Shown: positions 1,443-43,227, counted from the stretch's first letter. The stretch: 64,000 nt of DNA from Octopus bimaculoides (GCF_001194135.2 NC_068983.1:1211793-1275792), one strand, 5' to 3'. The notes: generated from the letters alone by a model not told the origin. Program-made: numbers and translations.

Positions 1443-1586
1443 ATAAAATGGTACACAACCTTTAGCTCTGTCTTCTTCAATAGCTTTCTTCAAACTGTTT
1501 CCTCTCATGGAACGTCTATCATCCAATTCTATATCTCGCACCTTTATTAGAGCTATCTTGCAAGCCTTTACAAAGGACGAGTGTGT
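1443..1586 (-). CDS. DDC-like: DDC-like copy B coding exon 5
   Basis: tttgcag|[48 protein letters not shown]|gtaagt; 144 nt. Confidence 0.92.
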
Positions 1587-1707
1587 CTGCAAATTAAAAG
1601 GAAGTAATGAAAATAGTATCGATGTATATATGCACATACTAAATGCATGTAACAGAACCTGGAGCACACACACACATTGGCACACATATACATATATATA
1701 TATCATC

Positions 1708-1751
<44 letters not shown>

Positions 1752-2945
1752 NNNNNNNNNNNNNNNNNNNNNNNNNNNNNNNNNNNNNNNNNNNNNNNNN
1801 NNNNNNNNNNNNNNNNNNNNNNNNNNNNNNNNNNNNNNNNNNNNNNNNNNNNNNNNNNNNNNNNNNNNNNNNNNNNNNNNNNNNNNNNNNNNNNNNNNNN
1901 NNNNNNNNNNNNNNNNNNNNNNNNNNNNNNNNNNNNNNNNNNNNNNNNNNNNNNNNNNNNNNNNNNNNNNNNNNNNNNNNNNNNNNNNNNNNNNNNNNNN
2001 NNNNNNNNNNNNNNNNNNNNNNNNNNNNNNNNNNNNNNNNNNNNNNNNNNNNNNNNNNNNNNNNNNNNNNNNNNNNNNNNNNNNNNNNNNNNNNNNNNNN
2101 NNNNNNNNNNNNNNNNNNNNNNNNNNNNNNNNNNNNNNNNNNNNNNNNNNNNNNNNNNNNNNNNNNNNNNNNNNNNNNNNNNNNNNNNNNNNNNGCTTTG
2201 AAAAACTAATTGATAAATATCATATTCATTTTTTTCTCAAATAAGGCAGCGAAATGGTGATATATTTTGGTCGCATATAACCTCTTCAGCAGAATATTGA
2301 ACCTACAATATATTATTACACTAATTTACATTTAAAATAAAGAGACCCAGGGCGTGCCTCAAAAGTTCAAAAAGATTCTTTCGGCAATTAGGTGAGGCAG
2401 TACATAGCATAAAATATGTTAACGCTAACTTCTTCAAAATAGCAAGAACAAATCCGTTGCTAGTTTTTTTTTTTTTTTCTCTCATACTGGTTTTCTCTCA
2501 TACTGGTTTGACACCCGGTGTTGCCCAGAGAATTACGTATTGCTGTGGTGAAAAAATTCATGAAAGTGTAAGTTATCGTTGATAAATTTCAACACCGCTA
2601 TCGTTGATGCCGGAGAGACGATACTGTGAGGTACGTTTTGATTTTCTTGCATTTAAGTTCAAAATCCTTCGAGGTAAAATTATCTTTCAGATTTTAGGGG
2701 CCGACAAATGAAATAACAGTTCAGTAATGGGGTCGAGTGTCCTCTGTATCTTTCTCTGTCTGTCTCTTTGTCTCTGACTGTCTGTCTGTCTATCTGTCTG
2801 TCTGTCTGTCTCTTTGTCTCTGACTGTCTGTCTGTCTGTCTCTTTCTCTCTGACTGTCTGTCTGTCTATCTGTCTGTCTGTCTGTCTCTTTCTCTCTGAC
2901 TGTCTGTCTGTCTATCTGCCTGTCTGTCTGTCTCTTTGTATCTGA

Positions 2946-3002
<57 letters not shown>

Positions 3003-6000
3003 GCACTCTCATAGGTAATGAAGCCAATCGACTGCATGCAGTTGCTCAGTGATTCTAACTCATGAAACGTTATCAAGGAAGACAAGACAATTCTAACGTA
3101 TTATACTATGATATGTAATTCTATACATACAGAGGTGAAGGTCTCATTAATTAATTATTATATATACTACTTACATTTTATTTACTATGTTTCAATATAC
3201 TTACCTTTTCTAAGGCGGCGAAGCGGTAGAAACGTTAGCACGCCGGACGAAATGCTTAGCGGCATTTTGTCTGTCTTTACGTTCTCAGTTCAAATTCCGC
3301 CAAGGTCTACTTTGCCTTTCATCCTTTCGAGGTCGATAAATTAAGTACGAATTGTGTACTGGGGTCGCTTTAACCGACTGCCCACCTCCCAAAATATTTC
3401 GGGCCTTGTGCCTAAAGTAGAAAAGAATATACTTACCTCTTCTGATTTATAAGCAATTAATTTTGTAACAGCTATCCAGTCCTCCATTTCGTTATTTTCT
3501 GTTTTCATTTTATTTATGGAAGCGGTTCTGGCAGCGAATAGACTCATTAACATGCACTCAGTAGACGAATTCTAGTAACAAATATTGTACACCACCGGAT
3601 TAGTTTAGTTAAATATTAATTTCTTTTAAATATTGTTTCATGGTCTTAATTGATAATACTTTGTAGACAACTAAACAGATAATGATAATGTTATATAAAA
3701 AGATATTTATACTAATTTCTTACCCGTCATATAACAGCTAACTTTGAATTATACTTTTGTCATCATGACCAATAGCAGGAAACATAGCACGCATGCAATA
3801 GTTATATTTTACCGTTTATCGGAAGGGATATTAATTTTCAACAGAGAAGTATTTTTTTACATGAAAATGAAGTTACATAAAGCAAATTCCTTATTTTTAA
3901 ACCTCCTCTCATAAATATTCTTGTCATTTACTGCTCTTCCTCCCCCTCTTTTTCCTTTGCGATTATTTTTTCTCTCACTGTGTATGTGTGTGTCGTGGTG
4001 GTGGTGGTGGTGGTGGTGAAGGGGCTACATTCTTTTACTCATTTCCTGTCACCAAGCCAAGTGTATGCCAACTTCTATGCTTGCATACTATATGTATTCC
4101 GTTTAGTCTCACTCTCACACTCTCTCTCTCTCTGTGTATGTATATATATATATATATATANNNNNNNNNNNNNNNNNNNNNNNNNNNNNNNNNNNNNNNN
4201 NNNNNNNNNNNNNNNNNNNNNNNNNNNNNNNNNNNNNNNNNNNNNNNNNNNNNNNNNNNNNNNNNNNNNNNNNNNNNNNNNNNNNNNNNNNNNNNNNNNN
4301 NNNNNNNNNNNNNNNNNNNNNNNNNNNNNNNNNNNNNNNNNNNNNNNNNNNNNNNNNNNNNNNNNNNNNNNNNNNNNNNNNNNNNNNNNNNNNNNNNNNN
4401 NNNNNNNNNNNNNNATATATATATATATATATATATACATATATATATCTTACCTGGATTACACCTCCTCCATCTCCTTCAGAAGTAGACAAGAAGATTT
4501 TAGGCAGTTTTATAGCCTTTGCCAACCAGTCTAAAACAATGACTTCTAGTTCAGTGGCTGCAGGAAAGGATTTCTGAAATATACGCAACAGTTAATCTAT
4601 CTATATCATTGTTTGAGAGATATTTCAGAATTTACACTGATATATATTAAAGTTGTCCTTCAATAAAATTTCATAGTCGTATAGAAATATCTTTAGAAAA
4701 TCTGTTGTTTATCGAGTTAAATACATTCTGTCATATATTCTTTAATTTAAAGAGAAACTAGATTTGAACATCTAGAAATGACGGCCTCTCATTGTTGGCA
4801 TCATTGTACCTTAAAAATGGTATAAGTGCGACACGTGGAAATTGTACAGAACGAAAAAGATTGCGAAGCTATTTACAAAAGAAAGGATAATTTGCATTTT
4901 TATTTTCCTAAGTTATTTTACTTCCAGTCATTGTTAAAAATTCAGTCTGGTAAAACATGAACTCTTTGGTAAGATAGCCTGATATTCTTATCTTATAGTA
5001 TTCACTAAAGATATTTCTGCAACACACACTCACAATTTTTGAACGATTGAGAAAATTGTGACATTACTGATTATTAATTTCTAACATAGACAAAAGACTA
5101 ATTTTCGGAATGGAACAAGAACTTTATTATTAATTGTTCTTTCATTTAGCAACCTTCGGAGATATGATAAACAACGTTGACTACGGAGAGACTTGAATTC
5201 ATATATTTGAGGCAATAAGATTTCTATAGTGAATATGTGCTGTTGAAATGGGAACTTCATATATTTTGTTACTAAACATGTAATAACTCTGATCACTTTC
5301 GGCCACTATGTCTAACTTAATATCACCCCCAGGTGATGTTTTTCAATCGTATATGGGGCACCATATCCCACTCTAGCAAAGATTTATCATTGTTGGAGAC
5401 ATATCCGAGTGTAAGGAGTTGGTCGGGGATATTTTTGAGAAATTTATCCAGAGAACTTTTTAATTGTATGGGAACCGTTTCCGTTTTGGCGTAATTTGGT
5501 ATGGTATCAAGGAGATCCGGACCGGTTGAGGTAAAGTAGTTGTGTCGTAATGTTGCTATGCGTCTTGAGTTCGATTTTTGTAGTGGGTGGTTAGCACGGG
5601 GGCCAAATCTTGGGTGGATTTTAAAACTGATGCCAACATCATTTGTGCAATATTGATGGAATATTTTCCACATCGCACAAATGACGTAGCGCTCCCAGCG
5701 GCGTTGGAGAGAGTAAAGATTGAGTTTTATTTTAGACGACCCCAATAGTCAATGCCTGTCACGCCGACTATCTTTCTTGTTATTGGCCTCTGGAGTGCTT
5801 CCACTTTTATAATGAGTTGCTTCGTGTGAGAAGACCACAGTGGGCAACAATATTCCAGGTGGGGCCGGGCAAAAGTATAGTAGAGAAGAGTGGTGGTGTG
5901 AGCATCTTCAGACCGGAAAGTTCTCAGAATTCAGGAGCACATCTTGCGGACCAAGTCAACCTTGCTGTTTACACATTTTAAATAATTCAGTTGTATTTAA

Positions 6001-8137
6001 ATCAAATTCTAAAAGTAACATCAGATTTGGAAAGTGTATGTTGTTAAAATTTGAACTTTCATGTCATAGCTAATTCGGCAACCATCGGTGGTATCATCAA
6101 TTGAGCAAAAATTGAACTCGTAAAATCAGTGTGATTTAATTAAACACACACAAAAGTGATGTAACTGGTTGAAAATGCTGGAGTAAAGTGAAGAGTTGTG
6201 CATGGAAAGAGTTCTTCAGACAAGTGTGACAATAAAAGAGAATAGGTAGAACAGAAGAAGAGTTAATGTAATTAGTGTGTTATAAAATATTATAATTAGT
6301 TTGGAGTTACGTAGAATGGCTAGTGGGTAGATATATACAAAGTTAGCGGGCGGTCACATGCACTGTTTTGTGGTTAGTTATGTAAAATAGATAGTGAGTT
6401 TAAACAATATTTAATACATCGTTATATATTTCAGAACTAGTCAAGAACGCATTTGCTCGGTGATAATGTATTATTTCGTTATATTTTAGATTTCATTACT
6501 AAATGTTGATTTCGTATGAGCTTCCTTACATTATTGTGACAGACATAGGATTTCATTCTAGACTGCTTTCGGAAATGGTGACATCTCTTACTTGCAAATA
6601 TTTGGTCCATGATTTACAAATTGCACATAACTAATATTCGAAATTATGTTGCTAAATGTATCTGTCAATGTGGATATCAAAATATTAATAATAATCATAA
6701 CTGTAGTCTATTCACTCAAAATCAATAACCAAACAATTTACAAAATACTCCATTGCCTCAATAGGCAGATTACCATGTGGTGCATTTCTTCTCTCAGTAT
6801 ATAATTGGCTGTATTTCAGTAAATCACTTCTTCTCTTTGACATGATTTAGCATCTTCCTTAACTGGATCATCTATTTAGTCACTGACCTCCCGGTCATGC
6901 GACAGGCATTTACTAGTTCAAGCTGCAAACAGAATCTAAGCAGACCAAACATGTTCGTTCTATTTATCATAAATTCACTCATCACAGTCATATCATATCA
7001 AGTACCTAAGTTTATTCCCCGTTTTGTTAGGAGGGTGTGGCCACAACAAGACACACACCAGGCATTCCATTCATTTCCCAGCTCAAAGGAGCGAGCTCCG
7101 TTCTATACTCGGGTCAAGGCATAGAACGCAACCCCCAATATCAACAGCAGGGCCCGACAGTATATGCTGGTTTACTCTCGCTATATCATGCTGGTTCCGT
7201 AGCTTTTTGAGCAACATCAGATTCGCTCATCCGTCCACAAACACTCTACAAGCTTTCCTATCATTTATAAACTCTCTTGCTTCTCTCACTCCAGCACCTC
7301 TAACTACTTAAGCGTTCCTCACTCCATCCATCCACGCAAATCGAGCTCTGCCTCTGGTTCTGCTGCCTGCCACTTCAGCCTTCATCACCCTCCTTACCAC
7401 CCGCTTCTCACCCATCCTCTCCATGTGGCCAAACCACCTCAACCTTCGTCTATCCAATTTGGTTGTCAGTTTTTCTTTCATTTCTGCTCGTCTTCGCACA
7501 TCCTCATCCTGTCCATCCGTGTCACATCAACCATAGCCCTCAAACATCTCATCCCAAACACATCTAGTCGCCTCCTCTGCACATCTCTCAGCTCCCAAGT
7601 CTTTGCACGATATAACATTGTCGGTACAATCACGCCCTCATATACACCTCTTTTCACTTTCATACTCAACCTTTTGTCTCGCAGCATATCTTTGACAACT
7701 CCAAGTATTCTATCCATTCTATCACTCGGTATCCCACCTCCTCAGCCAACATCCCATCCGCCGCCACATGTAATCCTAGATACTTAAAAACATTCACCTA
7801 CTCTCACATCTTACCATTTATACTCACATCCATTCTACCAGCCCTCATCACGGTATCTGCACCAAACGTGTGCTTACTCTTTCGTACATTTTCTATTCAT
7901 ATTTTTATCAGAAAGTCACAGGTTGAAAATTTGGTAAATTTGACTCGAGTTATCCTGATCGATAGGACAGGTAGCATAGAGAATACAAGTAAAGTGACAG
8001 AAAGGAAAAATTTTGAATTCTTGAAATTCTTCATTTCATAAATAATCCTGTAGAATTGTATATGCATACATACTACATACATACAAGCATACATAAATAC
8101 ATTCATACATACATACATACATACATACATACATACA

Positions 8138-8168
<31 letters not shown>

Positions 8169-11010
8169 CTACCAGTGAAGACCTCAATAAAATGTAAGTA
8201 CAACAGACCTGACATAGTGATTGGGGACAGAGAAGAGTAACTGTGCACAGTTGTGGAAATTAGCTGCCCAGCGGATGTTAACATAAAGCTGAAGATCAGT
8301 GAAAAAGAGAACACCTATGCTGAATTATTGCGAAATCTGTAGTTACTCTATCCAGATTGCAAGTTCAGGTTTATACCTGTAATTATTGGAGCCCTGGGAT
8401 ATGTAACACACTGCCTAAATGCCAATCTTGAGAAATCGAGCTTCTCAAAACCAGAAGGGTGAAATCTGATTCGAAGACTTCAGACCCAATCCATCACTGG
8501 AACTGTAAAGATCTGTAAAACATTCCAGTTTATCATTTAAGTGTAGATGAGCATGTCTAGATACTCAAGTCTATGCGTGAGAAGACATACATAAAACAAA
8601 ACAGACAAATCTGCACATATACATGCATGCATATATACATACATACGTACAAACATACATACATACAACCATACATACATACATATATACATCCATCTAT
8701 CCATACATACATACATACATCTATCCATACATACATACAAACATACATACATACATACATATATACATACATACATACATATATACATACATACATACAT
8801 ACATATATACATCCATCTATCCATACATACATACATACATACATACACACAAAAACACCCTGTTGTTGATGTTGAAATATCAATGAAGGAACCCTGGATC
8901 TTGGTTAGAAACCGATTCTTTCTCTATTAGCAAGAACTCTTGAATTAAACTGAATAATGACATACATACCTACACACACACACACACACACATACGTACG
9001 TACATGCATACATACAAACATACATATGTATGTATGTGTTTATGCACACATATTCGCACACAAACACATACACACATATATGCAGTCATACCAATTAATA
9101 AAATACGACGTTGTGATTTCTACAATGCAAGCAGAGCGAATGCAGAGCGAATGCAGAGCGAATGCAGAGCGAATGCAGTGTATGACTTACCCAAGATATG
9201 ACGTCAGTTGCGAGCGCATTTGAGAACATTCCTCCGAGAATAGCTGCATAAGATGTTCGCGAGGGGAAGAAAGAAGCGAATCTTGGATGTTGCCAGTGAC
9301 ATATCTGTTGGGTGTAAACGAGCAAACGCGATAAATGAAACTACATAAACGACTTCGGTTCAATGAGTGGGGAATAACTATATGAAATAGGTAAGAAAAT
9401 TGAGGTTAGATCGATAAAATGATGATAATAAATGGTAAAAGATGAATGGCGATAAAATGAGATGACATAGAATACAAAGAAATAAATTGATGTTAACGCC
9501 ATCACTTCTGCATGCAAGATATTCGCAGTTTACGTCAAAAGCCAGAACACTAAAAGACTTGTAAAGTAAAAAAAATAATAAACCAAATTCATATGGTACT
9601 TGTCACTATGCGACATCTCATTTCCTACGTTGTATGAGAGTTAAGAAAGTATAAAGGATGCTAACAAAAGTCCCAAGTTATAAAAGCATAGAAGAGTTGA
9701 AGTGGTGGGGGTGAGTATATAGGAGGATTAGTTAGGGAATAATTGAGGGGAACACTATTGTTTGTACCTTAAGAATGTGTTACACAACTTGTGTTTGAAA
9801 CCAATAATTCAGTCACTCCGTTCCGTCCCTCCGGGCACACCTAGAGGATACCACTGGCGCACATAGAACATACGCGCAAACACGCAGTTATACGAATGTG
9901 TAATTTTACTGTTAAGTAATAAACCATCTCCGACTGCAAGGGGATAGAAACTGTATCCCCCTCCCCACTAAGGGATAGAAACTGTATCCCCCTCCCCACT
10001 AAGGGATAGAAACTGNNNNNNNNNNNNNNNGTATCCCCCTCCCCACTAAGGGATAGAAACTGTATCCCCCTCCCCACTAAGGGATAGAAACTGTATCCCA
10101 CTTATCCCTCTCTTTTCTTCCCCCTCCTCTCTCCTTCTCTCCTGACGAATCCACCTTCCTCTCTCTCTCCTAAATATTTTACCTCTATTTTTTGTTTCTC
10201 ATTCTTGACTATTTCACTTCTAAAAATTCTTCTTCTATGATTCTGTATAAACGTTTATACTTGGGTGCGACAAGGAAATTTATTTACCGTTCACGTCGTA
10301 AAATGGCACAAGCTTAATATTTTTGGGAGAGAGCCAGTCGATTAGATCAACCCTAGTAGGCAACCGCTACTTAATTTATTGACACCGAAAGGATGAAAGG
10401 CAAAGTCGACCTCGGCGGAAGGCACCAGTTTAATATTACCAACAACCGCCTCCTCAATCAATATCAACCTAGAGTCTCCCTTCTTCCCTCTCTCCTTTTC
10501 TTTATTCCTAACTACTTTAGACAATTGCCAAACTCCTGTTATTGTAACAACTTCCTTTTTTACCATTTTGTTTCTTCATAGATACGTTTTTCTGTTTCAT
10601 GTTTTTACTCCGTTCTTCCATCTTCACCACTCATTTAAAATTATCCCTTCGGCGAGTTAATTTAGGATTCCTGAACAACAATGTAACCCTTCATTTAACT
10701 AAGGTATCTTCGGCCTGATGAGTAGCTAGCGGAGCACCTCCTCGTTAACTAATTATTACTTCCGAAAGTCTGTTAGCAAGAAAACATATGTAGCTTGATA
10801 TGTATATATATATATGATTCGTTTCAGTTATTTCACTGCGCTCATGCTGGAGCACCACCTTTAGTCGAACAAATTGCCCCCAAGATCTATTATTTGTAAG
10901 CCTACTACTTGTTCTCTCGGTCTCTTTTGCCGAACTGCTAAGTTACGGGGGACGTAAGCACACCAACATCAGTTGTCAAGCGATGGTGTGGGACAGATAC
11001 AGACACACAA

Positions 11011-11041
<31 letters not shown>

Positions 11042-11051
11042 TATATATATT

Positions 11052-11092
<41 letters not shown>

Positions 11093-12071
11093 CGCAGGAA
11101 AACTCGTCAGTATGGGATTCGTTAAAATCAGTTTTGACAGAGATTCAACTAGCAGGAGCAGGACTTTTCCATTTGTAGATTGATCAAGATGTTCGTGTTA
11201 TAGACAGGTTCTTTCTGAAACATAATCTCCGAACGTTTAATTGTTGCCCAAGTTCTTTATTCTTTCTTCCAAATTCAAGAAAAGAAGGTTAATCCGAGTT
11301 AGTGTTGAAAAGAAAATATCTTAACTTTTCATGCCGAGCTAAACGACTACATAAGAGGTCAAAGAATAATCAATGATCACTTGGAAGAGTGACAATATTA
11401 ACCAGCAAAACGTGGAATATATTACTACCGTTTGTTTATTAGGGGTCTTCCCGCTTCTAGGTGTGTATAAGATAAGTGGTAGAAACAACTCGATATTACC
11501 AGGTAAAGCAAAGAAAGAGATGTCCACTTAGCGTTACATTAGACCCATCCAAAATGCATGCATCTCGCCTGCGACTGAAATTGTATATGATGGGATTAGG
11601 TATATTATTATATAAGAGGCGTGCTGAAAAGTTCCTGGCTTTGCGTAATGGTAAATTCAGAAGGATCAGTTAATTATGATTTTATTCGACATATTCCCCT
11701 CCCAAATTCACATGCTTATTGCAGCAGTCCTTCACATTTTCTAAGCCTTATAAACCAAGTCGGAAAGTTGGGACTCCAGATAAGCCTTTCGCGATATCCT
11801 TAAAGCCAAGAGATTTTGCAGCACTCCGTCGTTTAAACGAAGAAGTTTGTATAAAACTACTACTTACTCCTGACATGATTATTCGTTCGATATCAGCAAA
11901 AACATCGTCCCAGGGTTCTGCTTTTTCTGGAGCTCTATCTGTAATCAAAATTCTCAAGAAGCCGGGTGCACATACGGGTAAAACCTTTCTGCTTCGAATA
12001 TTATTAAAATAATCAGTTATATATTTCGCTAATTCTACAGCGGCGGCCTCGAAATTTTCAGCATTTTCCAT
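1443..12071 (-). CDS. DDC-like: DDC/AADC-like PLP-dependent decarboxylase, copy B (5 exons in window; 3' part beyond left edge)
   Basis: Exons 11868-12071, 9191-9304, 4454-4573, 3437-3571, 1443-1586; all GT-AG, phase 0, no stops; sizes 204/114/120/135/144 match DDC exon architecture; motifs [30 protein letters not shown]. Confidence 0.93.
2500..3005 (+). mobile_element. Possible Helitron/Helentron-associated (DINE-1-like) non-autonomous element
   Basis: ACCCGGTGTTGCCCAG-type terminal motif (similar CTCGGCGTTGCCCGGG near 31258) followed by a (GTCT)n microsatellite; ends not resolved. Confidence 0.3.
3207..3425 (+). mobile_element. tRNA-derived SINE (Meta-domain-like core) with 13-bp target-site duplication
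   Basis: Box A/B-like head, core GCCTTTCATCCTTTCGAGGTCGATAAATTAAGTAC shared with 34770-34985, 40180-40330 and 10340-10430 (minus); flanked by AATATACTTACCT at 3194-3206 and 3426-3438. Confidence 0.8.
3437..3571 (-). CDS. DDC-like: DDC-like copy B coding exon 4
   Basis: ttactag|[45 protein letters not shown]|gtaagt; 135 nt. Confidence 0.92.
4454..4573 (-). CDS. DDC-like: DDC-like copy B coding exon 3
   Basis: atttcag|[40 protein letters not shown]|gtaaga; 120 nt. Confidence 0.94.
5300..6200 (-). mobile_element. CR1-group LINE 3' fragment (degenerate ORF2 C-terminus)
   Basis: [10 protein letters not shown]...GPDLLDTIP...[14 protein letters not shown]; same family as 13340-13800. Confidence 0.75.
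6990..7880 (-). mobile_element. RTE-clade LINE 3' fragment
   Basis: [35 protein letters not shown]...[12 protein letters not shown]; frameshifted. Confidence 0.8.
8166..8957 (+). mobile_element. 5'-truncated RLE-type (R4/Dong-like) retrotransposon bordered by (CATA)n
   Basis: [20 protein letters not shown]...[10 protein letters not shown]...[11 protein letters not shown] (PD-(D/E)xK-like RLE); 3' UTR motif shared with 44468, 55523 and 46495. Confidence 0.75.
9131..9178. repeat. 11-bp tandem repeat (GCAGAGCGAAT)x4
   Basis: Direct reading; sits just inside intron 2 of copy B next to the donor. Confidence 0.9.
9191..9304 (-). CDS. DDC-like: DDC-like copy B coding exon 2
   Basis: ccaacag|[38 protein letters not shown]|gtaagt; 114 nt. 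Confidence 0.93.
9939..10100. repeat. 31-bp minisatellite (AGGGATAGAAACTGTATCCCCCTCCCCACTA)n
   Basis: About five units with an internal N gap; each unit has a GGGATA/TATCCC inverted pair. Confidence 0.85.
10819..11040 (-). mobile_element. Tail half of abundant tRNA-derived SINE (octopus-type)
   Basis: Matches left halves of 24561-24960 and 35456-35838; ends in (CA)n. Confidence 0.75.
11868..12071 (-). CDS. DDC-like: DDC-like copy B coding exon 1
   Basis: [68 protein letters not shown]|gtaagt; 204 nt. Confidence 0.94.
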
Positions 12072-12168
12072 GCCGTTTTTTCAGATGAAGGCTTAAAAAA
12101 AATTAAAATTAGATTTGGTTAATTTACTGCTTTATTTATTTGCATGTCTTTATTTTTCAAATATTTAA

Positions 12169-12242
12169 TTACGTAATAATACACCATTATTTAATTACGT
12201 AAATTATTTTTATTGCATAAATATCATCATTTGGTTACGTAA
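12169..12242. promoter_or_regulatory. bZIP-site cluster (3x TTACGTAA, 1x TTGCATAA) upstream of copy B
   Basis: TTACGTAA at 12169, 12195, 12235; TTGCATAA at 12213; about 100-170 bp 5' of ATG; equivalent cluster upstream of copy A. Confidence 0.55.
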
Positions 12243-13207
12243 CAATCCGCTGTTGAAGTTTCAGGTTAGATCTGTTAATCTCGATAATTAACTGGTCTTA
12301 TTTGGATAAGAAAAAAATTCGCTTGTTTACAGAGAAATGCTGACAACTTTGTTGATTAAATTTTGAAGTAAATAAACATTTTCCCGGTTATCACCAATTC
12401 AACTTTCGTCTTTTTGGTATTTCACAAATTTTGAAACTTTTCCGAAAATATTAAATACAAAAGTGCATGGTTTTAGAGGTGCAGAATAGATGCATTTTAA
12501 GGAATCTATGAATACGCATTTCATGCATTACAATTAGTTATATTCTTAATAAAAATGACTGAGAATTTGAGTAGAATCCTTGAACAGATTTACAAAGATA
12601 TTATCGCTCGCATTGTCAGAAATTATTTTCAACGTAATATTTTAGATGTATTCCATTACAAAAGGATGTTTGAAATGTTCTGTCTGGTGCGAAGTATGCA
12701 ATGGTAATATTTTTTATCTCTCGAATTATTAATTTTACGAGTCTGTGACTGGATATATATATATATAAAGTACCTATACTTATTTCGATACTATCAATTA
12801 TGATCCTTAATTTATAAATATGAATATATGGAATAAACATGATCGGTATGTTATATTTTACATACACTTTAACACATCTTTCAGACGTGCGCAAACATTA
12901 CTATGTATCTAATAAGGTTAACTCTTAATCCGGATTGTCTATTCTTCTAGCAACATTATCACGTTTCTGCCAGGAAGGCAGCAACGTAACGACAATTTGT
13001 TGAAACATGAGTAATATTATCTTCAATAGAAATAATGTTATAGTCAGTGTTTTTTAAGTTAAGTGACTTCACTGATGCTGTTGATATTTGTTAGAGAATT
13101 TTTAGCTATGACGTGATCAAGCATTGCAAAAGCAAAATATTTGCTGTTCTCTCGACAAAATATCTGCCACCATAATACAGTTTTTGCTCTCAGCTGAGCT
13201 TAGTGTT

Positions 13208-13266
<59 letters not shown>

Positions 13267-13339
13267 AATAAATTGGTTTTATTATACACGCACAAATATT
13301 ATATACGCACATATGTATGTGTGTATGTATAAATGTATA

Positions 13340-13800
13340 TACGAACTCTACTCTCTCCAGCGCCGCCGCGAGCGGTATGTAATTTGCACGATGTTGAGAA
13401 TATACCACCAGCTTTGCCCAAAGGACCTGAACATTAGCTTCAAGGTACACCCAAGGCTGGGACGACGGGCCATATGTCCTCTGCCCAATTCAGGATCACA
13501 ATACATAAATACACTGCAACACAATTTCTTTTCCTCAACAGGCCCTGCCCTGTTTAATATTGTCCCAAAACAGATCAAAGAGGAAAAGTATCCCATCACC
13601 TTTAAACGGAATCTGGACAAATTTCTTCAAGGAATACCAGATAAGCCACCTCTAACTGGAAATAGCTCACTCAACAAGCACTCCCTACTCGAGTGGGTCA
13701 TGCTACCACAAAACTTGACTTTAAAAAATAATTTACATAATCCTATCAGGTGGTGCTATCAAGTTGGACATGACCTGGACCAATCTTTGGTCGAAACATA
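13340..13800 (+). mobile_element. CR1-group LINE 3' fragment
   Basis: LYSLQRRRERY...GPALFNIVP...FKRNLDKFLQGIPD. Confidence 0.78.
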
Positions 13801-13816
13801 TCTAAGTTTATCTCAG

Positions 13817-13866
<50 letters not shown>

Positions 13867-14995: not shown

Positions 14996-15042
<47 letters not shown>

Positions 15043-16334
15043 CGACAGGTTTCTTTCAGTTTCCATCTACCNNNNNNNNNNTATCATTAAAAATACAGAT
15101 TAAATACAGGACATCACCAGCGAGTGAAAAATACGTAAGAATAGGACAAAATACCAAAAGAAGTTTAACTCCTCCTCAGTTGTCGACTGTTTATTACTAC
15201 TAGTTTCGAGCTTTCAATGACAAGACAAGAAAACATCATAAGACAGAAGCTTCCAGAAATGTTTAAAATATGAAATTTATGGAGAGTTAGGGCTTCGAAC
15301 GAACAAACGATACCAGAGTGGACATACAGAGTTAGCAATCAACGCAGACAGACATTAAGGGCCGTAAGGCCAAGACGAATTGTAATGGGTAACGCCTGGG
15401 AGAAATTTTGAAAGGATATAAATACAAGAGAAGAGAAAAATATCAAGACGCGAGAGAAATGATGTCAAGCTGTCTGGATATCCCATCCAAAAAGAAAAAT
15501 GGCTTTTAATCACGTGTGACCAACAGGCAGGGTGGGGAGGACAAGAGAGGGGAGGAGGGAAAGAAGCGTAGGGAGTGAAGAGAAGGGAGAAGGAAAAAAG
15601 ATACAACAAAGGAAAAAAGATACAACAAAGGAAAAAAGGGGACAACAAAGACGGAGGGGGAGAAAAAGAAATAAAGAGGATTACAGAGGGATAGAGAGGA
15701 AGAAAGAAAATAAGCAGAGAACCGAGTGTGGCGTCGCAGAAATTATACATAAATGTAAAATCTTACAAAAGTTGTGTGGCGTTCAATTTTAAATAATAAA
15801 AAATAAACATTAGACATCACAAACGAGAGAAAGATACGAAAATACACGACAGATAAGTAGAGGAGAAATACAAAAAAAAAAGGATACACATTAAGTACAG
15901 GATATCACCAACGAATGAAAAGTACTGTTGACATATTTTTCACTCGTTGGTGATGTCCTATACTTCATGTGTATTTTTAATTATTTATAATTGAACGCCA
16001 CGCAACCTTTGTCAACAGTATATATGTATATATANNNNNNNNNNNNNNNNNNNNNNNNNNNNNNNNNNNNNNNNNNNNNNNNNNNNNNNNNNNNNNNNNN
16101 NNNNNNNNNNNNNNNNNNNNNNNNNNNNNNNNNNNNNNNNNNNNNNNNNNNNNNNNNNNNNNNNNNNNNNNNNNNNNNNNNNNNNNNNNNNNNNNNNNNN
16201 NNNNNNNNNNNNNNNNNNNNNNNNNNNNNNNNNNNNNNNNNNNNNNNNNNNNNNNNNNNNNNNNNNNNNNNNNNNNNNNNNNNNNNNNNNNNNNNNNNNN
16301 NNTATATATATATACACATATACATATATATAAT

Positions 16335-16340
16335 TTTATT
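16335..16340 (-). terminator. Candidate polyadenylation signal AATAAA of DDC-like copy A
   Basis: TTTATT on + strand, about 35 nt downstream of the TGA at 16375-16377. Confidence 0.45.
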
Positions 16341-16374
16341 CACATATCTAATTTAGTTGTTAAAAAACATAGCA

Positions 16375-16581
16375 TCAGTCATGGACATTTGGAGTAAGTA
16401 ACACTGCATTAGCCAGTTTGCAAATAAGGTTACAGCAATGCTGTATATCTTCAGGTTTCGTGTGAGATGTGTTGATAACGAATCGAAGGAAAAGAATATC
16501 ATCAATTTTGAAAGACAGCATATAAAGTTCTCCGCTGCATTCTATTAATTTGAGTAACTTTTTGTTGCATTCATTGCTTCC
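16375..16581 (-). CDS. DDC-like: DDC-like copy A coding exon 12 (terminal)
   Basis: ttaacag|[68 protein letters not shown]. Confidence 0.9.
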   Translation of the reverse strand, partial: GSNECNKKLLKLIECSGELYMLSFKIDDILFLRFVINTSHTKPEDIQHCCNLICKLANAVLLTPNVHD

Positions 16582-19500: not shown

Positions 19501-22500
19501 ACAATTCGAGTTTGGAGCCCAAAAAACAGAAATAATTCGAGTTTGGAGCCCCAAAAAACAGAAATAATTCGAGTTTGGAGCAAAAAGAAAACAGAAATAA
19601 TTCGAGTTTGGAGCCCAAAAAAAAACAGAAATAATCCGAGTTTGGAGCCAAAAAAAAAAAACAGAAATAATTCGAGTTTGGAGCCCAAAAGAACAGAAAT
19701 GATTCGAGTTTGGAGCCCAAAAACAGAAATAATTCGAGTTTGGAGCCAAAAAAAAAACAGAAATAATTCGAGTTTGGAGCCCAAAAGAACAGAAATAATT
19801 CCTATCAGAGCAGACGCATTAGTTATGATAATGAAATATATATAACATACAGAAGCAGATAGAAGAGACAGGCTATAAGTACGTGAGGATTTTGGAAATG
19901 GATAAATCGATGGAGAAAGAAATGGCAGAAAAATTTAAGGTGGGATACTTGCACAGACTGAGACTTGTCCTTAAGTCGAAGTTAAACGAACGGAATAAGA
20001 TCGAAGCTATCAACACCTGAGCGGTTTCACTCCTTAGATATGGAGCAGGGGTAATCGCATGGACAGTTGACGAACTAAGCAGTTTAAACAGAAAGACAAG
20101 GAAGCTGCTAACTGGATATGGGTCACTCCACCCAAAACGTGACACAGACAGACTGTGTGTACCAAGAAAAAGTGGCGGAAGAGGACTTATTTGAGAAAAA
20201 AAGAACGAAACTGTAAACGCATGAATGATTTACCTTTAGGCGAAAACATATGACTGTCATTAGATTGTCACCAATGAGTTCAAATCTTTCATCCTTTTCT
20301 ATCAAATTCTTAAATATGTGAGCCAATTTTATATCCTGAGAAGAACAAATATAAAAGGAAATTATTTAATGAGAGAAAACAACAATATTCAAAAACACGT
20401 CCTTCATGATAGCGTAGTAAGTGTTTATAATTGTGAATGAATTGTATGTTTCTATATGATTGTGAAGACATTATTGCAATAACAGTTGAATAGCTAGGGG
20501 CAGCATATAAACTTTCATATACTGAATAATCTCAGTGTTATATGGTTAATAAATGTAGACAATATCTATTTACATATCTGTGCATCTTGATTAATGCTAA
20601 GCACATTTCTTTTAACCGACATGTTCCCTTAAACTAGCGTTTTAGTTTAGGACAATTTTTAAGTATGGATTAGTCGGTTGCATTGATGACAAACACGCAA
20701 GCATATTATGCATTAGTTTTCACTAATTTTATTCTTAGATTTTAATAATTTTACATTATTTATCATTATTTTCCGCACCCTGAGGTCATTCAATTTTCAC
20801 TGTAATTATCTGTCCGTTATGAAAATATGACCATCATTTCAGACTTTTTCTTCCCGGACTTTACTTGATTTTCTATTTCCCAACTTTGCTGTTGCTTATC
20901 AAATCCGAGTTCATATAGAGAAGCTTATAAATACAGTTCCGACATGTTGAGATAAATTTTACTCTAGACTAGAAGTTAGGAAGAGAAATGAAGTTTTGCG
21001 ATCAACAGCTGTCCTATTTCAGAGTATTTCATCAATTTGTCACATTGAATTATTAGTTAATGTAAGATGTCATAGCAATAACAAATTTTATAAGCATAGA
21101 CCAGATGACTGATGTTATAATGGAGTCAGTAAACATTTTCCCTAGAATAAGATACTATTAACAGAATGATTCGAGTACACAAAACAAAGCTCACTTTTCT
21201 GATGATTTCCTGAAGTTTGTGCATCCCAAAGAGTCGTAAAACAAACCAGAGTTTCAGAGATCGAAACGAACGTCCACAAGGAATTTGCCAGGACTACAAT
21301 GTACAACGTTTAACAAATCAATAATAATAGAGATTTTTTTAGTATTTGGCTTCAGCAAAGTTACAACATGCAAGCCACACGCGCGCGCGCACTCGTATGA
21401 ACACATTATTACATGTACATAATGGACTCTCGTTGTATTCGACGCTTAAGAGTCAAATAATTTGACTTTCATTTTTACTCCAGATTTTGCTTTTTGTGTC
21501 TTCTGTGAGACACTAAACCTGCTTGTTCTTTGCAAACCAGACGACATCCTTTGCACAGAAAACTGTATTCTTTTGAGTTACGTGCTCAACCCTTGTATCG
21601 ACATGGCTCATGATACCACTTTGAGAGATTTTCCTCCACCTATTACGGCCAACAGCACCTTTCTCGGATCTATTTCAAAACGGGGGCACCAGTTTTCATT
21701 TATGTTTTATGTAGTGTTTTTGGTACCGAAAGACTTTTAAACTTCGTATACTTATCTATTTTGTGTTATAGAACACAAAAAAATGTTTGTATTCGAATTT
21801 ATTTCATGTAAAAAATTGTCTTATTTCGATAATTTCTACTAATCACTGACGTCTATTCAGTTGAAAACAGTTAGCGCTGTAACGGTGTATATCGTATTAA
21901 TCCCCTAACCCTAACCTAACCCTAACTAGACTGTTAACCCTAACCCTAAAACTAACCCTAACTCTAGAATCCGAACTCTAAAATTGTTACACACNNNNNN
22001 NNNNNNNNNNNNNNNNNNNNNNNNNNNNNNNNNNNNNNNNNNNNNNNNNNNNNNNNNNNNNNNNNNNNNNNNNNNNNNNNNNNNNNNNNNNNNNNNNNNN
22101 NNNNNNNNNNNNNNNNNNNNNNNNNNNNNNNNNNNNNNNNNNNNNNNNNNNNNNNNNNNNNNNNNNNNNNNNNNNNNNNNNNNNNNNNNNNNNNNNNNNN
22201 NNNNNNNNNNNNNNNNNNNNNNNNNNNNNNNNNNNNNNNNNNNNNNNNNNNNNNNNNNNNNAATACTGGTGCCCCCGTTTTGAAATAGATCCCCTTTCTC
22301 AAATTCTCATGCTTCAATTCTAATATACTTCGTATATTATTCTTCAACATATTCTTGTATCTAAGAAGGGGTCTTCCTTATATTTCGCACTCCCGTTTGA
22401 AGATGGCCACAAGTGGGAATTTTGGTAGTTCCCATCAGTCATCCAAGCAAAATGGCCAACCCATCTTAACTGAGACAGTATCAAGAAGGCCATTTTGCTT

Positions 22501-23172: not shown

Positions 23173-23267
<95 letters not shown>

Positions 23268-23625
23268 GAGAAAGAAAGAGAGAGATAGTGAGAGATAATG
23301 AGAAACAGAGAGAGGCTTTCAAAAACTATAACTGAACCAAAAATGACTTCTTGAATTGTAATTAAATTTCAACAAGTTGACAACACCGATAGAATGTAAT
23401 TGAAAAGAAACCTCTTTCTCTCTGTCTTTGCCTTTCATTTTTTTCTTCTTCCTCTTTTTCTCGTCTTTTTCATCGTTCTTCCTAAAATTGACATCTTGGA
23501 AGGTCATTTAGCATCAGCCACCTGTTAGTCAACAGAGACGCTTTCTTTCACTTTCTACTCACTACTCCACCCCTCCCTCCCTTCCTTCCTCTTTCTTCTT
23601 TCTCCTCTTCTAAACACACAAAACA

Positions 23626-23657
<32 letters not shown>

Positions 23658-25862: not shown

Positions 25863-25924
<62 letters not shown>

Positions 25925-39872: not shown

Positions 39873-39921
<49 letters not shown>

Positions 39922-41444
39922 GGGAGTGTGTGTGTGTGTGTGTGTGTGTGTGTCTATTCTTGTGTGGGAAATACATCTGTGGGGTGGACAGGGAGCTAGA
40001 AAGAAAAACATAACCAAAAGCTTTCCTTTCTAAATACATGTAAATCTAAAAGGGAAATAAACTCGTAATTCCTTTGAAATTATCTCCACTCTATATATGA
40101 TAATCTTCAACAATTGCAGCTATGCTTTCTGTTTCCTTTCTCCAGCTTGAAGATAAATTTCTATCAATATATTTCTGTTGTACGTTCTGAGTTCAAATTC
40201 TGCCGAGGTCGACTTTACTTTCGTCCTTTCGGGGTTGATTAAATAAGTACCAGTTACGCACTGGTAGCGACTAGAGCGACTTAATCCCTTTGTCCTTGTT
40301 TGTCCCCTTTATGTTTAGCTCCCTGTGGGCAATAAAGAAATAAATATATTTCTGTTGTGAAGCGCAACAGATCAACTGTTTAGTTAAATAATCAACAATT
40401 ACAGAAAAGATAATTACGCGTTAGGACCGGAAATTGAAGTGAGATGGCTTCGAAATGGTTGCCCATCAATGTTCAGGTGTATGTTCGGTAAACATCCTTG
40501 AAATAAATATCTCTTAACCCCGGCAGAAAACTACCCCCGGATAATTCACACCCCACCCCCAACGACAAATGTAACTCGCGATGATTATCCCCTGATAATC
40601 ATTATTCAATTATAATTCTTACTCATTATTAATGCAATTATTATTTATTATAATTTTTAATTATTAATGAATGTTCGTGTAAAGCCAACAATTTACAATG
40701 TTTGTCGTACTATGAAAGGAATGTGACATTAGAAATCTTATTAAAGGAATCATTTGCCTCTTGAACAGCAGAAAGAAACATGGCCATGTGAATTGTACAG
40801 GTGCAGTTGCCCCACAACCAAAACATTTCCAGTGTTTTATATTAGTGAAGTCTCATGGCTAAGCGGTTGAGGTATTCGGCTGCTCAATATTTTAAGCTCG
40901 TGAGATATGTGGCGGTGTGTTGTGTCCTTGAGCAAGACACTTTATTTCACGTTGCTCCAGTCCACTCTGTTGGCAAAAATGAGAAGTATCTGGATTTCAA
41001 AGGGGCAATCTTGTCAAACTTTGTGTCATGCTGAATCTCCCTGAGAACTACGTTAAGGGAACGCGTGTTTTGTGGATCGGATCAACTAGAACACTTGTCG
41101 TTGTAACCGATGGAGTGACAGTGTTTACATATGAGATGACGTAAGAGTTGAATTAAACTCCAGCAGCATCTTAAAGAAATAAAACTGTCATACGACCGTT
41201 ATTACTCAATGAAATCCATTTTTGATTATCGAAAACTTACGCCTGGCATAATTATTCTTTCAATATCTTGAAAAACATCTTCCCATTTATCTGGATTTTG
41301 TGGGGCTTTTTCTGGTATTAAATGTCTCAGGAACCCGGGAGCAACAGAAGGTAAAATTCTTCTACTTCGAATATAATCAAAATAATCATTTATATATCCA
41401 GCCAACTGTGCAACGGCAGCCACGAAATTTTCAGAGTTGTCCAT
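16375..41444 (-). CDS. DDC-like: DDC/AADC-like PLP-dependent decarboxylase, copy A (complete, 12 coding exons, 481 aa)
   Basis: Exons 41241-41444, 39549-39662, 39050-39169, 38752-38886, 36278-36421, 34137-34203, 33224-33318, 30816-30883, 26164-26254, 21195-21293, 20234-20335, 16375-16581; sum 1446 nt in one frame from ATG to TGA; all GT-AG; motifs WLHVDA, NPHKW (PLP lysine), WQIPCGR.FRSLKLW, CFRLK. Confidence 0.95.
16920..18060 (+). mobile_element. Degenerate R4/Dong-like RLE retrotransposon fragment
   Basis: [62 protein letters not shown]; many stops. Confidence 0.7.
18232..18737. mobile_element. MITE/foldback with ~150-bp terminal inverted repeats
   Basis: 18232-18380 is the reverse complement of about 18590-18737 (CCTAATTCCTCTGAAC...GAAAGAAACTTCA). 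Confidence 0.75.
18740..19830 (+). mobile_element. Degenerate R4/Dong-like RLE retrotransposon fragment
   Basis: [50 protein letters not shown]. Confidence 0.65.
19500..19802. repeat. ~31-36-bp minisatellite (AACAGAAATAATTCGAGTTTGGAGCC[A]n) x9
   Basis: Nine copies of GAGTTTGGAGC; units differ mainly in A-run length; derived from RLE coding segment IRVWSxKTEIIP. Confidence 0.88.
19850..20190 (+). mobile_element. R4/Dong-like RT-downstream fragment
   Basis: [54 protein letters not shown]. Confidence 0.7.
20234..20335 (-). CDS. DDC-like: DDC-like copy A coding exon 11
   Basis: ttctcag|[34 protein letters not shown]|gtaaat; 102 nt. Confidence 0.92.
21195..21293 (-). CDS. DDC-like: DDC-like copy A coding exon 10
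   Basis: attgtag|[33 protein letters not shown]|gtgagc; 99 nt. Confidence 0.93.
21666..22292. mobile_element. Non-autonomous DNA transposon, 27-bp perfect TIRs, 8-bp TSD (Merlin- or hAT-like)
   Basis: GGATCTATTTCAAAACGGGGGCACCAG at 21666-21692 and its reverse complement at 22266-22292; CCTTTCTC at 21658-21665 and 22293-22300; internal CCCTAA-like repeats. Confidence 0.85.
22440..22800 (-). mobile_element. RTE (BovB-like) LINE fragment
   Basis: [10 protein letters not shown]...[20 protein letters not shown]. Confidence 0.7.
23750..25620 (-). mobile_element. Degenerate Penelope-like element, interrupted by a SINE
   Basis: [15 protein letters not shown]...NVINWF and FDISMGSTD resemble Penelope RT motifs; AT-rich downstream part heavily decayed. 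Confidence 0.5.
24561..24960 (-). mobile_element. Near full-length tRNA-derived SINE (octopus-type)
   Basis: Minus-strand head AGTGGCTATGTGGTAAGTAGC...GGTTCCGGGTTCATTCCC (box A/B), internal (TG)n, tail ...CGCAGTCAAATGACTGAAACAAG. Confidence 0.8.
26164..26254 (-). CDS. DDC-like: DDC-like copy A coding exon 9 (catalytic loop)
   Basis: gttttag|(W)[30 protein letters not shown]|gtaaga; 91 nt, phase 2 to 0. Confidence 0.88.
27950..30420 (+). mobile_element. Long degenerate CR1-group LINE (endonuclease and RT remnants)
   Basis: [57 protein letters not shown]; many stops and frameshifts. Confidence 0.75.
30816..30883 (-). CDS. DDC-like: DDC-like copy A coding exon 8 (PLP-binding lysine)
   Basis: cttgcag|[22 protein letters not shown](W)|gtaagc; 68 nt. 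Confidence 0.94.
32560..33160 (+). mobile_element. RTE (BovB-like) LINE fragment with internal deletion
   Basis: NCWKVRTL...NIDIPALS, then [25 protein letters not shown]. Confidence 0.7.
33224..33318 (-). CDS. DDC-like: DDC-like copy A coding exon 7
   Basis: ttttcag|(C)[31 protein letters not shown]|gtaagt; 95 nt. Confidence 0.94.
33376..33717. mobile_element. Composite foldback element: tRNA-like heads plus hammerhead-like core
   Basis: Outer 57-bp inverted arms (33376-33432 / 33661-33717), inner 23-bp inverted tRNA box-A arms, CTGATGA...GAAACGTT at 33623-33658. Confidence 0.55.
34137..34203 (-). CDS. DDC-like: DDC-like copy A coding exon 6
   Basis: ttttcag|[22 protein letters not shown](C)|gtaagt; 67 nt. 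Confidence 0.93.
34290..34660 (+). mobile_element. tRNA-derived SINE with V-domain-like core
   Basis: TTGTGCTGCTGAGCAAGATGCTTTATTT and tail GATCGGATCAACTGGAACAC shared with 40855-41118. Confidence 0.6.
34770..34985 (+). mobile_element. tRNA-derived SINE (Meta-domain-like core)
   Basis: Similar to 3207-3425 and 40180-40330. Confidence 0.65.
35456..35838 (-). mobile_element. tRNA-derived SINE (octopus-type)
   Basis: High similarity along its length to 24561-24960. Confidence 0.8.
36278..36421 (-). CDS. DDC-like: DDC-like copy A coding exon 5
   Basis: ttttcag|[48 protein letters not shown]|gtaagt; 144 nt. Confidence 0.94.
37400..37833. mobile_element. MITE with ~130-bp terminal inverted repeats
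   Basis: AAGAGGCGATGCAATACGACC...GGGCTATCCTCAGCTGCATAA (37402-37500) mirrored at about 37730-37830. Confidence 0.7.
38163..38545. repeat. Compound (CT)n/(CTGT)n microsatellite
   Basis: Direct reading; one of many TA, CA, CT, CATA, TCTA and TAA tracts in the window. Confidence 0.95.
38752..38886 (-). CDS. DDC-like: DDC-like copy A coding exon 4
   Basis: ttattag|[45 protein letters not shown]|gtaagt; 135 nt. Confidence 0.92.
39050..39169 (-). CDS. DDC-like: DDC-like copy A coding exon 3
   Basis: atttcag|[40 protein letters not shown]|gtaagt; 120 nt. Confidence 0.94.
39549..39662 (-). CDS. DDC-like: DDC-like copy A coding exon 2
   Basis: ccaacag|[38 protein letters not shown]|gtaagt; 114 nt. 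Confidence 0.93.
40180..40330 (+). mobile_element. tRNA-derived SINE fragment (Meta-domain-like core)
   Basis: GAGTTCAAATTCTGCCGAGGTCGACTTT...CCTTTCGGGGTTGATTAAATAAGTACCAG. Confidence 0.65.
40855..41118 (+). mobile_element. tRNA-derived SINE with V-domain-like core
   Basis: TTGTGTCCTTGAGCAAGACACTT core; tail shared with 34290-34660. Confidence 0.65.
41241..41444 (-). CDS. DDC-like: DDC-like copy A coding exon 1
   Basis: [68 protein letters not shown]|gtaagt; 204 nt. Confidence 0.95.

Positions 41445-43193: not shown

Positions 43194-43227
<34 letters not shown>

Follow-up and report, generated by a model that had tools for sequence, protein, structure and literature searches.

A 64,000-nt stretch of the Octopus bimaculoides genome (GCF_001194135.2, NC_068983.1:1211793-1275792; the window, whose positions are the coordinates used here unless another sequence is named) contains two divergent genes of the AADC or DDC (aromatic-L-amino-acid decarboxylase) family, copies A and B. 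They belong to a tandem array that comprises at least three genes, the third of which (copy C) is inverted, and the array is flanked by an OATP transporter gene on one side and by the canonical DDC gene on the other. A, B and C are, judged by their sequences, derived from cephalopod DDC, and neither A nor B is its one-to-one orthologue. In the predicted proteins the residues that define the decarboxylation chemistry are kept, and the network that would bind the substrate ring and close the active site is jointly replaced. That A and B are active decarboxylases with altered substrate preference or kinetics is the reading favoured here and appears probable, if by no means assured.

The best protein matches of the window are O. 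bimaculoides models with 98-99% identity. Exons were located with a tblastn probe, and the splice sites were then set by eye and by script. Copy A, on the minus strand, consists of 12 GT-AG exons from 41444 to 16375 with a single unbroken open reading frame (ORF) of 481 aa, and the protein is identical over its full length to RefSeq XP_014775474.1. Exon 9 (26254-26164), which had not been placed in the initial annotation of the window, is now located; its phase fits and RNA confirms it. Copy B, also on the minus strand, has exons 1-5 in the window (12071 to 1443), whose left edge falls inside intron 5, and exons 6-12 lie past that edge. Exons 1-5 have the same sizes in A and B (204, 114, 120, 135 and 144 nt), as have exons 1-11 in the chromosome-level O. 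bimaculoides assembly. The initial annotation had described two head-to-tail AADC-family genes with intact frames and the same exon structure, which is confirmed by the ORFs, exon sizes and RNA junctions, and its count of 155 identical residues out of 239 was exact on recounting. The Pfam profile PF00282 (Pyridoxal_deC) matches copy A over profile positions 1-375 of 375 with 426.7 bits (cut-off 27; E=8e-128) and the B fragment with 185.8 bits (E=1e-54), E-values that show the homology is not due to chance. The exons and adjoining features are given below, where A1 stands for exon 1 of copy A and so on, X1 is one O. bimaculoides RNA run from 2015, the other X numbers are further RNA runs (RefSeq isoform X4 excepted), and residues are numbered as in human DDC (hDDC).

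41241-41502, minus strand: A exon 1, a 58-nt 5′ untranslated region (5′UTR, 41502-41445) and 204 nt of coding sequence (CDS) from the ATG at 41444; GT donor; an X1 contig of 433 nt and depth 282 follows the genome colinearly over 41239-41502, where it stops; depth zero in X15, X16 and X29.
39549-39662, minus strand: A exon 2, 114 nt, with the altered first signature motif LVNVVISW; AG/GT; RNA joint 39169 to 39549; loose end at 39662 matches the end of A1.
39050-39169, minus strand: A exon 3, 120 nt; AG/GT; RNA joints on both sides.
38752-38886, minus strand: A exon 4, 135 nt, with the phosphate-cup residues S147-T148-T149; RNA joint 38886 to 39050; loose end at 38752 matches the start of A5.
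36278-36421, minus strand: A exon 5, 144 nt, with His192 in SHSSVEKA; AG/GT; within the 679-nt X1 contig.
34137-34203, minus strand: A exon 6, 67 nt, with TLGTVS (T246V); AG/GT, phase 1; within the 679-nt contig.
33224-33318, minus strand: A exon 7, 95 nt, with Asp271 in HVDASFAG; AG/GT; loose end at 30883 matches the end of A7.
30816-30883, minus strand: A exon 8, 68 nt, with the lysine motif FSMNPHKW for pyridoxal 5′-phosphate (PLP), K303; X1 contig of depth 412; depth zero in X33, X34 and X35.
26164-26254, minus strand: A exon 9, 91 nt, the catalytic loop, with Tyr332 in SPLYLQC; loose ends at 21294 and 30814 match its two ends.
21195-21293, minus strand: A exon 10, 99 nt, with the altered second motif, in which G354 and R355 are kept; RNA joint 20334/5 to 21194/5, depth 446.
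20234-20335, minus strand: A exon 11, 102 nt; RNA joint to A10; loose end at 20233 matches the start of A12.
16375-16581, minus strand: coding portion of A exon 12, 207 nt with the TGA stop (16377-16375) counted in; AG acceptor, in-frame stop; the 3′UTR enters the gap 16035-16302.
12072-12700, minus strand: unspliced 5′ leader of B; a 1440-nt X1 contig of depth 119 follows 11868-12700 colinearly and without a difference and, by its length, reaches about 13136.
12092-12093, minus strand: AG acceptor before B with a polypyrimidine tract; a spliced exon would begin at 12091, 20 nt upstream of the B ATG; used by RefSeq isoform X4 and not by the X1 contig.
11868-12071, minus strand: B exon 1, 204 nt of CDS from the ATG at 12071; GT donor; X1 has 100% of the sampled words; loose end at 11868 matches the start of B2.
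9191-9304, minus strand: B exon 2, 114 nt, with LATDVISW; AG/GT; the B1-B2 junction is in an X1 contig.
4454-4573, minus strand: B exon 3, 120 nt; AG/GT; loose end at 3573 matches the end of B3.
3437-3571, minus strand: B exon 4, 135 nt; an 881-nt X1 contig of depth 517 shows no differences; depth zero in X15, X16 and X17.
1443-1586, minus strand: B exon 5, 144 nt, with His192 in THSSFVKA; AG/GT; loose end at 3437 matches the start of B5.

The window holds 16 N-gaps, and every N-run is intronic or intergenic, those closest to coding sequence being at distances of 40 bp (from the donor of B3) and 73 bp (on the 3′ side of the A stop codon). The same gaps are also present in the chromosome-level assembly. 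All gap-containing introns (B1-B2, B3-B4, B4-B5, A4-A5 and A9-A10) are bridged by mRNA contigs, and exon order and reading frame across the gaps are thereby verified. Many microsatellites flank the gaps.

Comparison with the parent gene and with other assemblies shows how the array is built. The canonical octopod DDC with intact motifs is a separate gene (O. bimaculoides XP_014775466.1, O. sinensis P0008, Argonauta P0009). Read in the orientation of the genes, the O. sinensis locus runs OATP transporter, A-like gene, B-like gene and, about 45 kb further on the same strand, canonical DDC. Canonical DDC has the same 12-exon structure, and all 11 of its intron positions are kept in the paralogues, which documents an origin by DNA-level tandem duplication of DDC. 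The sole internal exon that differs is exon 9, encoding the catalytic loop, which is 97 nt in canonical DDC and 91 nt (two codons less) in the paralogues. No further DDC-like exons were found in the window by tblastn. The third divergent O. bimaculoides copy, C (XP_052821926.1/927.1, reconstructed at 485 aa), has its last exon at 43099-43317 (minus strand) of L004, O. bimaculoides CM046603.1, and lies 3.5 kb past B on the opposite strand, tail-to-tail with it; in O. sinensis no C-like match was found in the 10 kb after B. Copy C is a mosaic, with A-like exons 2-3 (87-98%), B-like exons 4-9 (85-100%, exons 6-7 being equal to B) and distinct exons 1 and 10-12, a pattern that suggests gene conversion inside the array.

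As was first thought possible, the array exceeds two copies, copy C being the third. Two words of the initial annotation have to be given up. It had spoken of an amine-biosynthesis cluster, which is an overstatement, for the array consists of one enzyme's paralogues beside their parent gene, and the only non-paralogous neighbour, OATP, has a quite different and broad expression from which X1 is absent; linked and co-expressed non-homologous pathway genes, as in a metabolic gene cluster, are not what is found here. The last coding exon of this OATP/SLCO gene is at 49116-49598 on the minus strand (PF03137, E=5.5e-11), upstream of A, and the gene stands there in O. sinensis as well (L002 1-3433). 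"Orphan" is likewise too strong a term for genes that are already RefSeq and UniProt models named aromatic-L-amino-acid decarboxylase.

A neighbour-joining tree of 41 sequences and 476 columns, rooted on TDC as outgroup, including no HDC sequence and computed under four distance models, places A, B and C in one clade with 100% bootstrap, in which C groups with B. This clade joins the cephalopod canonical DDCs with 92-100% under the four models, inside mollusc DDC and far from the TDC outgroup, and 12 cephalopod-specific derived residues are common to DDC and the paralogues. The branch of the paralogue clade is 2.7-3 times longer than that of canonical DDC. The proposal of a lineage-specific paralogue expansion, and not a one-to-one DDC, HDC or TDC orthologue, is therefore upheld by the separate canonical DDC and by a clade of its own at 100% on a long branch. 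Support for placing the clade outside every cephalopod DDC is 100% under p-distance and drops to 6% under gamma 0.5, and placement with octopod DDC rises from 0 to 56% over the same shift. The former placement behaves like long-branch attraction, and whether the duplication came before or after the octopod/decapodiform split depends on the model; counts of shared derived sites for the two timings are 4 vs 6. In a protein database of 5.8 billion proteins the paralogue clade was found only in O. bimaculoides, O. sinensis and O. vulgaris, and the annotated proteomes of Argonauta hians and Sepia pharaonis had only canonical DDCs among the matches. A "Ddc-2" marker is reported in the single-cell atlas for Euprymna berryi, a bobtail squid (PMC12240821), which hints that DDC duplication may extend past octopods into decapodiforms.

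The paralogue clade evolves 3-5 times faster than DDC. In Tajima relative-rate tests the paralogues had 101-122 lineage-specific substitutions vs 24-37 in canonical DDC (p<=1.5e-9), and their identity to canonical octopus DDC is only 50-55%, although canonical octopus DDC and scallop DDC are 63% identical. The O. bimaculoides vs O. sinensis orthologue comparison, from which all dN/dS values below derive unless A vs B is stated, gave 0.475 for copy A (422 codons, p~0.001) and 0.45 for the N-terminal half of copy B. For A vs B the dN/dS is 0.36 (Z=7.7) with a dS of about 0.7-0.9. The constraint is real but clearly relaxed, with net purifying selection.

Presence in RNA runs was scored with 31-mers sampled from the first exons of A and B, contigs were aligned to the exons, and restriction is stated per run. 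X1 has 100% of the sampled 31-mers of both exons; the value was 0.00 in the 12 other O. bimaculoides RNA runs listed, and depth on the A and B exons was zero in the eight runs aligned (X15, X16, X21, X23, X29 and X33-35). The orthologues are present in runs X2-X7, which come from another organism. Both copies, from which tissue-specific products had been expected, are expressed and highly restricted, in X1 only among the O. bimaculoides runs listed or checked. No copy, then, is a slowly evolving one-to-one orthologue and neither is silent, the two outcomes that the initial annotation had named as contrary to its proposal. All 11 junctions of copy A are reproduced by X1 contigs at depths of 282-446, with A1-A3 in the 433-nt contig, exactly 79 nt of A3 plus A4 to A9 in the 679-nt contig and A9-A12 in a 349-nt contig. 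The B1-B5 junctions are in X1 contigs of depths 119 and 517, and the local depth of A and B contigs reaches 1247, contig depth being a poor measure of expression. The 5′UTR of A, 58 nt long, has its end at about 41502. Upstream of its ATG the mRNA of B matches genomic DNA without a break over 629 nt or more, through the AG acceptor, so B is not produced by splicing from A, and the RefSeq read-through isoform X4, from A11 to the acceptor at 12093/12092, is at most a minor form.

The exon of OATP, 8 kb upstream, is present in at least 14 O. bimaculoides RNA runs and not in X1, so only the decarboxylases show the restriction, and a co-regulated cluster is not seen. Cross-matching turned up a contig of canonical DDC in X29 but none in X1, an indirect observation that is suggestive only. 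In three deep runs from 2026, of which about 6% of the reads were sampled, copy C reads, which skip exon 2, occurred in X17 and X18 only and none in X19. The X17 reads within 38740-39700 cross-map to A exon 3 with four fixed differences, and they join exon 1 of copy C directly to exon 3, as in XP_052821927.1. The protein from such a transcript would lose residues 69-106 and with them some of the substrate pocket. Expression of copy C is thus low and occurs in a different sample from that of A and B.

Some features of the window were noted beside the genes. Three short repeat segments (3206-3453, 11629-11722 and 41014-41077, intronic or intergenic) have very high depth, as much as about 80,000, in all the RNA runs examined; they probably derive from SINEs or other transposons that are transcribed throughout the genome, and have no connection with the mRNAs of the decarboxylases. 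Two similar ORFs, at 5323-5745 (minus) in B intron 2 and 13124-13866 (plus) between A and B, look like fragments of the same retroelement family and have in common the pattern LYSLQRR.ERYVIC.M..I.HQ.C…F..HPR.G.

Within the 120 top database matches, DDC-type proteins that are not Octopus paralogues carry the three signature motifs I[AG]C[IV]GF[ST]W, D[YF]RHW.IPLGRRFR and FNFNPHKW with few exceptions, and all three are altered in A, B and C. The first and the PLP-lysine motifs read LVNVVISW and FSMNPHKW in copy A, and the motifs of copy B are LATDVISW, NFTKWQIPCGRPFT and ICVSPHKW. The changes first reported, in the first motif of both copies and the second of A, are borne out, and the second motif of B, which lies outside the window, is changed too. 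Kept in all O. bimaculoides copies are W71, F80, P81, H192, S194, D271, H302, K303, Y332, G354, R355, F357 and R447. Altered in all are T69C, T82A/S, A83R, G102V, F103I, C111A, A148T/S, S149T, F309T/I, D310S/G, H335C, D345N, R347T/M, H348S/T/K, L353C and R356S/P, with I101V in A and C and I101D in B, and with R358T/I in B. Cysteines are reshuffled in all paralogues: the conserved C100 and C111 are lost, and cysteine is gained at three sites that are invariant elsewhere, by T69C, by H335C within the catalytic loop and by L353C next to G354. The catalytic-loop exon is 19-28% identical to that of canonical DDC and about 40% identical between A and B/C.

Several of the altered positions are known from the human enzyme. 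I101 and F103 touch the catechol ring of carbidopa, and L353 touches F103 and R347 (PMC8003434). The G102S substitution shifts F103, with an 11-fold higher Km and a 6-fold lower kcat, R347Q/G and L353P are classed as "catalytic" mutations, and it is Tyr332, kept here, that protonates the quinonoid intermediate (PMC8003434).

An AlphaFold2 monomer model has a predicted local distance difference test score (pLDDT) of 80.2 and a predicted template-modelling score (pTM) of 0.79. It is of good confidence overall, its only weaker parts being the loops of the dimer interface and of catalysis (about 71-110 and 321-360). By Foldseek this predicted model matches human AADC 8ora, pig DDC 1js3 and HDC 4e1o with TM 0.92-0.94 and a root-mean-square deviation of about 2 A, and the best solved relatives are Drosophila, pig and human DDC (E=4e-145 to 2e-138). 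The full profile, K303, H192 and D271, and the DDC/HDC fold of the model mark the copies as group II PLP-dependent decarboxylases. One-to-one orthology, the signature motifs and the ring contacts and closure network of canonical DDC (T82/I101'/F103'/G102/D345/R347/L353) are lacking.

The array arose by duplication of cephalopod DDC at the DNA level and diverged fast, and on the favoured reading its products are predicted to be L-amino-acid alpha-decarboxylases that depend on PLP and act as dimers in the cytosol. K303 (the Schiff-base lysine), His192 (which stacks on the ring), Asp271, Tyr332 (which protonates the quinonoid), G354, R355 and R447 would all serve as in DDC, and because the residues needed for decarboxylation are retained, release of CO2 and formation of an amine (not an aldehyde) are expected. 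Since the residues for substrate ring and closure are remodelled together, with a catalytic-loop exon two residues shorter, substrate preference and kinetics should differ from those of DDC, and those of A from those of B/C. The likely role would be tissue-specific bulk production of amines, not neuronal transmitter synthesis.

A number of observations weigh against active enzymes. Of 147 near-invariant DDC sites 47 differ in one paralogue or more, 25 of them in every paralogue, and the changed sites include T69, G102, F309, R347, L353, R358, L408 and R285, at each of which single human substitutions cripple AADC (PMC8003434). The changed invariant sites are only marginally enriched in the three active-site loops (odds ratio 2.3, p=0.066), T246V and A273S occur in A only, and the phosphate-cup change N300S is found in B and C. 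Full-length B has a dN/dS of 0.62, and its C-terminal half, at 0.92, is indistinguishable from 1, a sign of weak constraint. D271E occurs in the A orthologue of O. vulgaris and O. sinensis only. In the O. sinensis assembly copy A lacks exon 8, the PLP-lysine exon (L002 28001-35507), and in exon 12 a run of T has one T too many, which shifts the frame (L002 56901-57140), so that copy A may be dispensable in the O. sinensis lineage. These defects are either lineage-specific decay or assembly error; in O. vulgaris A (P0003) the regions of exons 8 and 12 are intact. The poor measure that contig depth gives of expression also belongs on this side.

From much of this it could be argued that the copies are relaxed or decaying duplicates, transcribed but feeble or dead, which are pseudogenising or have been recruited for something other than catalysis, be it the binding of PLP or amino acids or service as an abundant structural or secreted protein. 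Cephalopod crystallins, derived from enzymes, offer a comparison for such recruitment. The change of one third of the invariant DDC sites, loss-of-function positions among them, the dN/dS of up to 0.92 in the C-terminal half of B and the exon 8 loss, 1-nt insertion and D271E of O. sinensis A all agree with this view, as do the many RefSeq isoforms that skip exons and the copy C reads in X17 that skip exon 2. Against it, intact 12-exon ORFs persist in O. bimaculoides A, B and C, O. sinensis B and O. vulgaris A despite an A-B dS of about 0.7-0.9, the long-term dN/dS (A vs B) is 0.36 (Z=7.7), and all residues of the decarboxylation chemistry are kept in every O. bimaculoides copy. The full-length mRNA is moreover very abundant in one run, and the N-terminus, on direct reading of the sequence, is not like a signal peptide. 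Decay or non-catalytic recruitment is on balance unlikely, though it deserves serious consideration.

A second alternative is that the chemistry has changed, giving an aromatic acetaldehyde synthase or oxidative deaminase, or an enzyme favouring Pictet-Spengler adducts. Known switches to aldehyde synthesis are His192 to Asn in insect DHPAAS and the catalytic-loop Tyr to Phe in plant AAS, and Drosophila amd is a precedent for a tandem duplicate of DDC with switched chemistry. Both His192 and the loop Tyr332 are kept in all five paralogue sequences, and the DHPAAS structure 6jrl matches worse than DDC (E=4e-116 vs 4e-145). The closure variants of human G102, R347 and L353, which divert L-DOPA to cyclic PLP adducts (PMC8003434), give this alternative some substance, as all three positions are changed here, and yet it seems improbable.

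It is quite improbable that A and B are a single gene with alternative exon cassettes and chimeric A/B proteins as real products. The idea arises from RefSeq isoform X4 (XP_052821924.1), which joins A exon 11 to the acceptor 20 nt upstream of the B ATG, from O. sinensis isoform X2, made of A exons 1-6 and B exons 7-12, and from an A model that overlaps the start of B in L004 (CM046603.1). A and B, however, each possess a full set of 12 exons and a separate start and stop codon; A exon 11 joins A exon 12 in X1, and A has its own 58-nt 5′UTR end there, the B mRNA runs unspliced through the acceptor for at least 629 nt upstream of its ATG, and the X4 junction yields a frameshifted tail. The O. 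sinensis chimera coincides with the exon 8 missing from A in that assembly, and the defects of O. sinensis A probably explain it. An assembly artefact by uncollapsed haplotypes or a mis-joined scaffold, which the 16 N-gaps might bring to mind, is for practical purposes excluded by the divergence of A and B (only 65% protein identity, dS about 0.7-0.9), by the same A-B order in the independent long-read assembly of O. sinensis, gap-free at these loci, and by a distinct mRNA for each copy.

Within the reading of A and B as active decarboxylases a more specific proposal concerns their tissue. The posterior salivary glands of octopus are rich in tyramine, histamine, octopamine and serotonin (PMC5554399), and since the gland is documented as amine-rich (PMC5554399) it is a reasonable guess for the source of X1. 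We tentatively consider it possible that X1 is the posterior salivary (venom) gland and the array its bulk amine synthases, the copies making different amines. Candidate products would then be tyramine (the octopamine precursor), serotonin or a non-canonical amine, and the diverged pockets of A vs B/C (V101 vs D101, T246V vs T, N300 vs S, and loop exons 40% identical) might underlie the difference between copies.

Three other assignments were considered and rejected. Identity as HDC or TDC was ruled out by the tree (which holds no HDC), G354 and H302; aldehyde synthase as a class was ruled out since H192 and Y332 are kept; and a role in ommochrome decarboxylation was ruled out on chemical grounds, the target carboxyl not being an alpha-amino-acid carboxyl.

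RefSeq and UniProt combine A and B into a single gene with isoforms and keep C apart. No description of these paralogues was found in a full-text literature search, and the comparative paper on Hapalochlaena and posterior salivary glands with its supplements does not mention decarboxylases; the genes are apparently annotated yet undescribed. The merged annotation will confound quantification of expression and single-cell "Ddc" markers in octopus. DDC is among the most conserved bilaterian monoamine enzymes and usually single-copy, and in one cephalopod lineage it has been duplicated at least three times beside the parent. If active, the paralogues are candidate enzymes behind the unusually amine-rich secretions of octopus, and they offer a natural experiment on AADC specificity at positions of human AADC deficiency. 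Octopamine is named after the octopus, and if the gland proposal is true they would provide the first molecular handle on its classical octopamine/tyramine source, and a case in which an enzyme of neurotransmitter synthesis was co-opted for the chemistry of venom and diversified there.

Among known systems canonical DDC/AADC (EC 4.1.1.28; XP_014775466.1, P0008, 8ora, 1js3, 3k40) is the closest. The paralogues share with it Pfam family, fold, 12 exons and the residues K303, H192, D271, Y332, H302, G354, R355 and R447, and they lie in the same chromosomal neighbourhood and nest within cephalopod DDC. They differ in being 50-55% identical, in their broken motifs, shorter loop exon and 3-5 times faster evolution, and in the restriction of A and B expression to X1. 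Human HDC (4e1o) has the same fold (TM 0.94) and is the second-best solved class (E=8e-133), but DDC structures match better (4e-145 vs 8e-133), and the paralogues keep Gly354, whereas Ser at this DDC position is what we take to be the determinant of HDC specificity. Invertebrate TDC (Strigamia P0075, Tachypleus P0100, Capitella P0151) resembles A and C in Ala82, where DDC has Thr, and Gln72-His73 is shared. Tdc1 is reported to be single-copy across bilaterians, including a squid (PMC12240821). The paralogues differ from TDC in Gly354 (Ser in TDC) and His302 (Asn/Ser in TDC), and TDCs fall outside all DDCs in the tree.

The best conceptual precedent is Drosophila amd (alpha-methyldopa-resistant, DHPAA synthase; 6jrl), a neofunctionalised duplicate beside Ddc. 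Like the octopus copies it is a lineage-specific, adjacent and fast-diverged DDC duplicate, and its role is non-neuronal, as is proposed for them. In amd, however, His192 is replaced by Asn, whereas the octopus copies keep both His192 and Tyr332, and the octopus duplication is independent, being nested in cephalopod DDC.

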